A DNA stretch of 64,000 nucleotides from Pocillopora damicornis. Lineage: Eukaryota. This document shows positions 58,320 through 59,835 of this stretch, one piece after another. How positions within the stretch are numbered: the first letter of the stretch is position 1; every line of letters starts with the position of its first letter. Made by a program: the position numbers and the translations under genes. The notes beneath the pieces are model-generated. The model was not told where the DNA came from, did no database searches, and saw nothing but the letters and a program-made list of their open reading frames with translations. The stretch is from positions 1-64,000 of the forward strand of contig NW_020844165.1 in the NCBI RefSeq assembly GCF_003704095.1, given 5' to 3'.

Positions 58320-58591
58320 TTACGTTATTTACGACAGCATTTTGTTTCTGTGATCAGTCACATGATTCAAGCTGGTTTGAGTTTTGGAAGGCCAGGCACA
58401 GTCTTAAATAGATTAAACGCCTAACAGGTGACTCGATCGATCGACGTAATTGTAATACCTAGTTTCCCGCGACTCGATCGACCGAGTTGTATTACTCAGT
58501 TTCCCCGCGGCCAAAAAGAACAAACTTTATTGAATATTTATTTTAATTACTAAAGTATCTTTACGTTGATCATGACTTTCGCAAATGTAGT

Positions 58592-58607
58592 GGCTCCTAA
58601 AAGAGCC
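58592..58607 (-). promoter_or_regulatory. Histone-mRNA-type 3' stem-loop immediately after the MULE stop codon
   Basis: Minus strand TAA-AAC-GGCTCT-TTTA-GGAGCC-ACTACATTTGCGAAAGTC, one substitution away from canonical GGCTCTTTTAAGAGCC. Confidence 0.65.
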
Positions 58608-58610
58608 GTT

Positions 58611-59835
58611 TTACAAAGTTACTGGGCCGTTGAGGTAGGAACACGCCTTCAGTAGTTTCCTTGCACTGCGGGCACCAGAGTTAAACTCATCCCAAGATCT
58701 TGGTCTGGGGTTCTCGGAACTTTTTTTTTTCTGGACGCTACGTAACTTCCTCTCGGAAATAAGCCTGATCTGAAGGGATGTCCGACGGGCCTCGCGGTGA
58801 AGAAGGCGGATCAGGAGGTACAGAGGAAGCTGGGACTTTCCAGACGCGCGGCGATTCAGCCCAAGATGCCAACCGTCTATGTCGTTGTTGGTTCGGACGG
58901 ACTTCATGACCACGCTCCAAGAGGACGGCGACCACTGACTGATTGATCTGATGAAAAAATATAATACATTACTAACTACGTACTTTAGTGATAAGTGGAT
59001 GATGTTGCTGTAACGAAATTGATCTGTTTGACCCTATGGTGATGTTGTGGTAAATTATTACTAATTTCCTTGTTCCATTACTAATCTTTCTCCACAAAGC
59101 CTGTGTCTAGTGAAACACGCACCCCTGGATCTCAACATTTGGCAAAAGCTTTCGGAGTACTATCCAGATGGCCTTCTCGAAGTTAACTGTTACTCTTTTC
59201 AAGGCAGGATTCGGTAGCAGTTCAAGCACACTTTTCAGTACCTACAATGGAGCCAGAAAAAAAAAAAGTCAAAACATCTTTTGTTATTTTTTTCTCAATC
59301 CATGAAATAGACACAAAACAATTAGAAACTATTACATACTAATTCCATTGTTTTCTTTTGACCATTAGACACTAAGTTTTAGACAATGTTTCACGGGTAA
59401 AATAAAACCACTCTAGCACAACACACAAAAAATATATATCACAGAAGACTTACCGCACGATAGTCCTTCTTCTTTTTTCTCGACCTGAGCGCGAACACCA
59501 GCGGCACCTACTTTGCATAGTCGTCTTTCCTTGATGGTCAGCAGCTGCGTGAAGGGATGACGGACGAGCTTGAAGGTACCATCGATATATCACGTTTTGG
59601 CCCTGCCCAGGTGAACCAGTTGTTCGGCTGTGGCAAACACAAGATGGCGGCGACCGTTGACGTTCACGTCTTTTTTCAGGAAGGCCTCAGGTAAGTGCTA
59701 TTCTTCGATGCTGAAGTCGAGGTCTGTTGGCTCCGCAGGTCTAAGGCGCTGGCAATGTCTGTTGGCTCGTCTGGCGATTAGCTCGGGATTCGGCACGGCA
59801 GGGCACGGACCATTCGTCAGTTTTTTAAGAAGTAC
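58611..59835 (-). mobile_element. Decayed intron-containing MULE (Mutator-like) transposase
   Basis: Three segments with splice signals. 59835-59454: ...HLVFATAEQL..L.RAKT*YIDGTFKLVRHPFTQL, GTAAG donor. 59241-59086: VLKSVLELLP...VTVNFEKAIW...IQGCVFH*TQALWRK. 58947-58611: WSVVMKSVRTNNDIDGWHLGLNRRA...LPLYLLIRLLHREA, ending TAA. These carry the MULE DGTF, DFE, CxFH and RTNN..GWH motifs; stops and frameshifts are present. Confidence 0.9.

Follow-up and report, generated by a model that had tools for sequence, protein, structure and literature searches.

The window analysed here is a stretch of 64,000 nucleotides (nt) from the coral Pocillopora damicornis (assembly GCF_003704095.1, contig NW_020844165.1, positions 1 to 64,000). 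Between positions 58418 and 60144, on the minus strand, it holds the remains of a FLYWCH-MULE DNA transposon, and directly behind the stop codon of the transposase gene stand a stem-loop and a downstream element that match the 3′ ends of the histone genes of the host. Textbooks treat a stem-loop 3′ end as the hallmark of the replication-dependent, intronless histone mRNAs of animals. The anatomy, the placement and the conservation of the signal in the transposon are matters of observation. The explanation regarded as probable is that the window contains a dead copy of a coral FLYWCH-MULE family whose active members use the histone 3′ processing of the host, with polyadenylation as a fallback.

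Read on the minus strand, the stop codon TAA (58613-58611) is followed by AAC, the hairpin sequence GGCTCTTTTAGGAGCC (58607-58592) and ACT, so that the spacing between the stop and the hairpin is only 3 nt. The hairpin is followed by the spacer ACTACATTTGCG and then by AAAGTCATGATCAAC at 58579-58565. The two parts of the signal are listed below.

58592-58607, minus strand: histone-type stem-loop GGCUCU-UUUA-GGAGCC, recognised by its fold; the identical 16-mer stands behind H1, H2A, H2B, H3 and H4 genes.
58565-58579, minus strand: histone downstream element AAAGTCATGATCAAC, 12 nt past the stem; it fits the consensus of the host histone genes and of other stem-loop-bearing MULE lineages.

The original prediction, which was made from the letters of the window, had described the same order of TAA, AAC, hairpin and ACT, and the minus strand reads exactly so. 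It had also pointed to a purine-rich GCGAAAG at the place of the element that pairs with the U7 small nuclear RNA (snRNA). This GCGAAAG is more than a mere purine run; judged by its match to the host histone consensus, at an equal distance from the stem, it is the beginning of the full downstream element AAAGTCATGATCAAC. The putative target for pairing with the 5′ end of U7 within the element is AAAGTCATGAYCAAC.

The hairpin folds into a 6-bp stem with the 4-nt loop UUUA, its second pair is G-C, and U occupies loop positions 1 and 3. The sixth stem pair is U-G, as in many histone genes of P. damicornis, and the 5′ flank AAAAC is also that of the host histone genes. On the 3′ side, the window copy and its orthologues from the TARA metagenomes read ACU, whereas ACC is found in copies of the L004, L005, L061 and L065 type, in Oculina and in the element L122, which is described below. 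A search of the whole window at the Rfam gathering thresholds gives no match, and the hairpin appears only under E-value thresholds, where its score with the Histone3 model (RF00032) is 29.3 bits (E 1.6e-6, 401 nt searched), below the gathering score of 34. The calibration on six genuine histone stem-loops of P. damicornis gave scores from 30.8 to 39.2 bits. The gathering score is too strict for the histone stem-loops of this coral, because three of the six (L016, L041 and L048, 30.8-33.3 bits) are missed by it. Such low scores are probably due to the loop sequence UUUA and to the sixth pair of the stem, which is U-G or C-G.

The comparison with the host genes was made on the P. damicornis assembly of 234 Mb in 4,393 contigs. 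The H1, H2A, H2B, H3 and H4 genes are clustered on contigs C1917, C2957, C3414 and C637, and their 3′ ends read GGCTC[T/C]TTTAGGAGCC, ACCA, about 8 nt, and AAAGTC/AAAGCA..TGAYCAAY. A 34-nt pattern composed of the stem-loop, AC, a gap of 4-22 nt and AAAGTC has ten matches in the genome and none in the control; seven of them belong to the histone clusters, one is the window site and two are non-histone sites (C3398 and C3769). The 21-mer around the stem-loop, with up to two mismatches, has 141 matches in the genome against one in the control. In blastn, about 50 nt of the window (58561-58611) align at approximately 85% to sequence at the 3′ end of genuine histone genes. On these sequence grounds, the stem-loop and the downstream element of the window are the coral's own histone mRNA 3′ end signal. 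The likeness to the signal used by SLBP, the stem-loop binding protein, and the U7 small nuclear ribonucleoprotein (snRNP) extends to the 16-nt hairpin, the A-rich 5′ flank, in the copies with ACC also the 3′ flank, the equal distance of the downstream element and the position 3-80 nt past the stop. In contrast to the histone genes, the upstream gene is here an intron-bearing transposase inside a mobile element and not an intronless histone coding sequence, the MULE version often comes with hairpins in tandem, two or three of them, and with a conserved AATAAA behind it, and its use in RNA would have to be assumed. A histone coding sequence was looked for near the window stem-loop and none was found.

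The signal is a property of the transposon family. This can be seen in L004 (contig C1759), a 745-nt deletion derivative with 61-nt inverted repeats, which are 90% complementary, and with GTCGTTTCGATACA subterminal repeats. Between these repeats lie the last part of the coding sequence, the stem-loop, the downstream element and AATAAA. The ends of L004, the only ones looked at for a target-site duplication of the MULE type (about 8-10 bp), have no recognisable matching flanks. In eight other copies, the sequence shared with the window runs from the stem-loop to a point about 180 nt downstream. In the closest relatives (L064 on C352, L069 on C3548 and the Logan contig L093), there are two hairpins, the first abutting the stop and the second, which has the downstream element, 64 nt further. 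The single hairpin of the window copy resembles the first of these in its 5′ context and the second in its 3′ context, which speaks for the loss of 64 nt between tandem stem-loops in this copy. Tandem arrangements of two or three hairpins behind the stop occur in L064, L069, L093 and L122, with the downstream element on the last hairpin only.

The last coding exon has 57 tblastn matches in the genome, of which 30 were fetched for a survey of stem-loops. Eight of these copies carry the stem-loop in sense, 3-54 nt past the stop; they represent at least five lineages with 48-68% protein identity to the window copy, and the tree of copies demands at least two gains or losses of the stem-loop. When seven stem-loop-bearing lineages are aligned on the hairpin, the mean pairwise identity reaches 0.93 in the 16-nt stem-loop and 0.61 in the A-rich flank, and falls to 0.25-0.28 in the last coding bases and the spacer. 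The downstream element, AAaG..ATGA.CAAC, is kept across the seven lineages, and the sequence beyond it is unalignable. As read from this alignment, the island pattern is a signature of selection, acting through retention or repeated capture, and is unlike that of a neutral passenger. The hairpin could also have proved to be part of a separate insertion; this is excluded, as it lies inside the terminal inverted repeats and forms the sole conserved non-coding island among diverged lineages.

The arrangement is also present outside P. damicornis: in a homologue from Oculina patagonica (P0015), GGCTCTTTTAGGAGCC, ACCA and AAAAGTCATGATCAAC are located 28 nt past the stop. The contigs L090, L093 and L123 show an equal arrangement of stop, stem-loop and downstream element. 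The most complete picture comes from L122, found in an assembly of the ENA, an apparently intact element of about 4.4 kb. Its inverted subterminal repeats (2673-2806 and 6943-7087; 94 nt at 83% and 43 nt at 88%) are located around the signal, and its open exons encode a PHD-like finger, a FLYWCH finger (29.5 bits) and both halves of the MULE domain. GT-AG introns are present at the intron positions of the window copy. Past the stop of L122 there are three tandem hairpins; the first two are GGTTCT..GGAACC variants, and the third, which has the downstream element, reaches 35.9 bits, above the Rfam threshold. The relative L065 has the same Histone3 score of 35.9 bits. Introns and a complete histone-type signal are combined in one gene in the window copy, in L060 and L075 of P. 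damicornis and in L122, so that the co-occurrence of introns and hairpin, which the original prediction had proposed to look for in intact copies, is found in an apparently intact element.

To our knowledge, no MULE with a histone mRNA 3′ signal has been known. No description of histone stem-loops on transposon genes was found in the open-access literature, and a 2026 preprint dealing with how histone 3′ processing evolved and a 2026 review on histone gene organisation mention neither non-histone genes nor transposons.

The identity of the gene as a MULE transposase, already recognised from the window alone, is borne out by the alignment of the window exons with L063 (tblastn, E about 1e-18), whose homologous uninterrupted exon on contig C1202 carries the MULE domain PF10551 (49.9 bits, E 4.5e-13). 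The exons were searched singly, by reference. With the FLYWCH-MULE DNA transposons of animals, the family shares PF10551 in homologous exons, the FLYWCH finger and the long inverted ends with subterminal repeats, and the internally deleted non-autonomous derivatives likewise occur in P. damicornis. The remaining parts of the window copy, from its 5′ to its 3′ end, are as follows.

60100-60144, minus strand: 5′ terminal/subterminal repeat with TGTATCGAAtCGAC-type units, matching both inverted-repeat arms of L004; the 5′ boundary of the element lies near 60144.
59928-60099, minus strand: 5′ non-coding region common to the deletion derivatives (blastn to L002-L010, 74-91%), without the PHD-like and FLYWCH exons of intact relatives.
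59454-59835, minus strand: exon with the first half of the MULE domain, equal to L122 4662-5054 (tblastn with the L063 exon, E 7e-19; the acceptor 59836/7 aligns with L122).
59242-59453, minus strand: 212-nt phase-0 intron GTAAGT...TTGTAG at MULE codon ~86; its removal restores the frame, and L122 has an intron at the equal position.
59086-59241, minus strand: exon with the second half of the MULE domain, equal to L122 5615-5773, with a TAG at 59107-59109 (Pfam PF10551 E 0.19 alone; tblastn with L063, E 9e-19).
58947-59085, minus strand: remnant of the last intron, recognised by alignment with L122; the donor is changed from GT to AT at 59085-59084, and a deletion has removed the true acceptor together with about 70 codons of the last exon.
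58611-58946, minus strand: 3′ portion of the final coding exon, an open stretch of 111 codons that closes with the stop TAA at 58611-58613 (57 tblastn genome matches; 68 homologous proteins).
58526-58542, minus strand: two AATAAA hexamers (58537-58542 and 58526-58531), the second inside the conserved TTCAATAAAGTTTG; the motif is kept in the subfamily including Oculina (L089), L090 and L122.
58418-58525, minus strand: CGCGGG(G)AAACTGRGTA repeats of the 3′ subterminal region; the element breaks off near 58418-58430, the 3′ terminal inverted repeat is missing, and the homology to eight copies ends at 58418-58433.

For comparison, about 2 kb separate the terminal repeat of L122 from its exon equal to window 59454-59835, and L004 extends about 250 nt beyond the point at which the window copy is cut off, into its own terminal repeat. 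The exon at 59454-59835 is broken by TAG at 59698-59700, TGA at 59590-59592, a frameshift near 59532 and TAG at 59508-59510, and the segment VQELGLQ...TWI of L063, L090, L091 and L122 is missing from the copy. The 68 proteins homologous to the last exon include the partial P. damicornis protein pdam_00021961, which is 100% identical, and a protein of Oculina patagonica. With its four premature stops, one frameshift and mutated donor, the window gene is to be read as a decayed, internally deleted FLYWCH-MULE transposase pseudogene. Orthologous contigs from the TARA Pocillopora metagenomes are 97% identical and have an equal structure; therefore, the insertion in the window is old and fixed.

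Three of the four spliceosomal sites proposed for the gene stand the comparison with relatives. In the alignment with L122, the acceptor 59836/7, the donor GTAAGT at 59453 and the acceptor 59242/3 coincide at every base with splice sites of that element, and the removal of 59242-59453 joins ...KKKKDYRA to VLKSVLELL... in a frame that aligns with the uninterrupted L063. The exception is the acceptor placed at 58948, which is not ancestral, as the true last acceptor was lost together with about 70 codons, and the donor at 59085 was changed from GT to AT. The change is visible in the alignment of GAGAAAG|GTTAGT in L122 with GAGAAAG|ATTAGT in the window. This last intron, which separates ...ALWRK from VQELGLQ..., is also conserved in L063, L090, L091, L093 and L122. 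At MULE codon ~86, many P. damicornis copies (C3071, C819, C360, C3144 and C800:69143-69731) are split by gaps of 110-260 nt, and other lineages (C1202, C842, C2955 and C2695) are uninterrupted. The gap is considered an intron, lost in some lineages, because its position is fixed and its length is variable. The presence of this intron in some lineages and its absence in others amounts to intron loss or gain inside a transposon family.

In the favoured explanation, the transposase gene of the scleractinian FLYWCH-MULE elements contains several spliceosomal introns, then the host histone 3′ signal and then AATAAA. The processing of RNA at the signal and its S-phase timing are inferred, and could proceed in the following steps. 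First, the transposase pre-mRNA of an active element would be spliced. Second, in S-phase cells, SLBP would bind the transcript and the U7 snRNP would cut it 4-5 nt past the stem (...GGAGCCACCA). The product would be a non-polyadenylated mRNA, which is made, translated and destroyed together with the histone mRNAs. The transposase would in this way be present during DNA replication, when cut-and-paste transposition can raise the copy number. When SLBP or U7 is lacking, the transcription would continue to AATAAA. The window copy inherited the signal and has lost its protein coding. An arrangement of this kind is seen in the H2A.X-type histone genes, which have two 3′ ends and in which the stem-loop and the downstream element are followed by AATAAA, as in the MULE gene; those are, however, intronless histone genes, whereas here the gene is a spliced transposase gene.

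If the signal is used, selfish elements would hijack the most tightly S-phase-coupled mRNA pathway of the cell and time their transposase to DNA replication, and a single natural transcript would be shown to undergo both splicing and U7-dependent cleavage. The annotation of coral genomes should then admit non-polyadenylated transposon mRNAs, which are missed by poly(A)-selected RNA sequencing. The 50-nt motif is a simple handle with which such elements can be found in other animals.

Several observations weigh against the use of histone 3′ processing by these elements. The first group concerns the distribution of the signal. No stem-loop is present within at least 190-1,500 nt of the stop in 22 of the 30 fetched copies, and whole lineages, such as the abundant L063-like one, do not have it; therefore, the signal is not required for the MULE family. 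An abundant lineage without the signal is seen in the TARA coral metagenomes, and at least one signal-less lineage has an ordinary AATAAA. The P. damicornis assembly contains no intact stem-loop-bearing copy, and none of these copies keeps an intact catalytic exon.

The second group concerns the 3′ end itself. A conserved AATAAA lies about 45-60 nt past the stem-loop, in TTCAATAAAGTTTG about 40 nt past the downstream element, in the subfamily that includes Oculina, L090 and L122. Judged by this motif, polyadenylated ends are likely to be formed besides the stem-loop ends, and the hybrid class is therefore possibly one of two alternative 3′ ends. Pandey and co-workers reportedly found in 1990 that introns put into mammalian histone genes impair the stem-loop processing, which would favour the downstream AATAAA. 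The U7 snRNA of the host was looked for and not found: the Rfam model RF00066 has no match in the genome, and likewise none in the control; a pattern of anti-downstream-element and Sm site has no match in the genome; and two anti-element patterns occur at background counts only. One candidate, C1917:25954, was rejected, as it is without a U7-like Sm site or hairpin and without an Rfam match. The pairing of U7 with the window element is thus presumed from its likeness to the element of the histone genes.

The third group comes from RNA, for which the data consist of four runs, available as assembled Logan contigs without read-end information. On the window copy, the contigs have a depth of 2-5 and are unspliced pieces of about 150-260 nt, one of which crosses the 59242 acceptor unjoined. 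At this low depth, the assembled contigs of the four runs show neither a joint at 59242-59453 nor an end at the stem-loop. The contigs that match the stem-loop region diverge into unrelated sequence at 58611, and therefore come from other stem-loop-bearing transcripts. The idea of a hybrid class of mRNA, with introns and a stem-loop end, as put forward in the original prediction, accordingly holds for the family at the level of DNA; it is not borne out for the window copy, which is dead and whose contigs are unspliced and show no end at the stem-loop.

A separate RNA contig with a depth of 25 covers 59955-60131, in the 5′ non-coding part, and has a joint 60012>60102 at which 89 nt are replaced by 36 other letters; it therefore comes from a related copy. 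This suggests that some members of the family are transcribed.

The MULE family is not the only place in which the stem-loop is found behind a non-histone gene. Outside the histone clusters, 36 stem-loop sites were inspected, and 35 of them lie behind non-histone reading frames or behind none. The remaining site is L105 (C1689:185150-185680), where an H2A.X-like gene with the C-terminal SQEY ends in the stem-loop; it is the sole histone gene among 20 singleton sites. At L107 (C2213:118280-118810), a stem-loop of 34.0 bits is located 38 nt past the stop of a reading frame for a pogo-type transposase C-terminus (DDE_1, PF03184, E 3e-8). At L018 (C1051:5681-8734), the tail of an IS1595/ISXO2-like transposase (PF12762, with an E of 6.9e-5 that misses the Pfam cut-off) has a stem-loop with one stem change 14 nt behind it, and a downstream element. 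A broader proposal can be formulated, in which several unrelated coral DNA transposon superfamilies (FLYWCH-MULE, pogo, IS1595/Merlin-like and unclassified families) each took over the histone 3′ signal and produce spliced, stem-loop-ended transposase mRNAs in S phase only. This proposal is tentative, and its chance is put at slightly under even. If true, SLBP and U7 would for the first time have a class of animal mRNAs among their substrates that are non-histone and contain introns, and such genes may supply about half or more of the histone-type stem-loop sites of P. damicornis.

The main rival explanation, which is unlikely, is a capture similar to that of Pack-MULEs, in which a histone 3′ fragment was picked up by an ancestor of the family and has no role in the expression of the element. 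Plant MULEs are known to capture fragments of host genes, and Pack-MULEs, like the coral element, have host-derived sequence between MULE ends. The Pack-MULE type is defined by captured coding fragments and by the lack of a transposase gene, whereas only about 50 nt are host-like here, no histone coding sequence accompanies the signal, and the family encodes its own transposase. The captured piece would also be a non-coding signal that stands in working position behind the element's own gene and is conserved amid decaying flanks. Neutral cargo would decay like these flanks, yet the signal is the only non-coding island preserved beside saturated DNA. The two or three tandem hairpins of one subfamily do resemble a sloppy duplication, many lineages manage without the signal, and the RNA contigs give no sign of its use; nevertheless, it is always in sense, just past the stop and with the downstream element at the spacing of the host, and its placement is equal in unrelated transposon superfamilies, which would not be expected from a passenger.

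A further rival, to be considered rather improbable, accepts that the signal is functional and denies that it forms an mRNA 3′ end. In this scenario, the signal could stop transcription and so protect the terminal repeat from read-through, could serve SLBP or U7 as a decoy or binding site, or could be a target of U7 repression by the host. The closest known link between U7 and transposable elements is found in human cells, where U7 snRNA represses the transcription of LTR12 retroelements through NF-Y, by means of motifs similar to the downstream element (PMC11417402). Both systems have a transposable element with a motif that matches the U7 pairing site; however, there is no stem-loop in LTR12 and the benefit is on the side of the host (PMC11417402), whereas the coral elements have a full processing signal at the end of their gene. 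Moreover, repression by the host would select for the loss of the motif, against its conservation. The conserved AATAAA that directly follows the signal hints that the mature mRNA may carry a poly(A) tail, but the two halves of the bipartite signal have been retained at histone-gene spacing, which is a requirement of cleavage and not of simple pairing with U7.

A chance hairpin, or a relic of a histone gene adjoining the insertion site, has a negligible probability: short palindromes are common and the Rfam score of the window is below the gathering threshold, yet the excess of the two patterns over their controls speaks against both ideas, and they are refuted by the arrangement in L004, in many other copies, in Oculina as another genus and in L122, inside inverted repeats and with no histone coding sequence nearby.

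Other hairpin-bearing repeats were noted in the course of the genome comparison. L106, L108 and L117 (contigs C2023, C2502 and C3105) and L054 (C852) belong to a multi-copy protein family (...MSNMRREGQLLPMKFEARFYE) with the stem-loop 31-43 nt past the stop. Three groups of repeated families, L102/L104/L112, L113/L116/L119/L017 and L110/L121, have their own conserved tails after the hairpin. The assignment of the L056/L114 family as Tc1-like was dropped, as it is without Pfam confirmation. Variants of the hairpin of the form GGTTCT...AGAACC occur genome-wide, also with conserved tails. Within the window, the stretch 57831-58361, just past the truncated 3′ end of the MULE copy, is covered by many short RNA contigs with a depth of up to about 2,900 and several internal joints, and looks like an abundant repeat or a small expressed element. 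Two further histone-type hairpins of the window, in minus-strand reading, are located at 17492-17507 and 61827-61842, where GGCTCCTTCAGGAGCC and GGCTTCTTTAGGAGCC are followed by ACCA.

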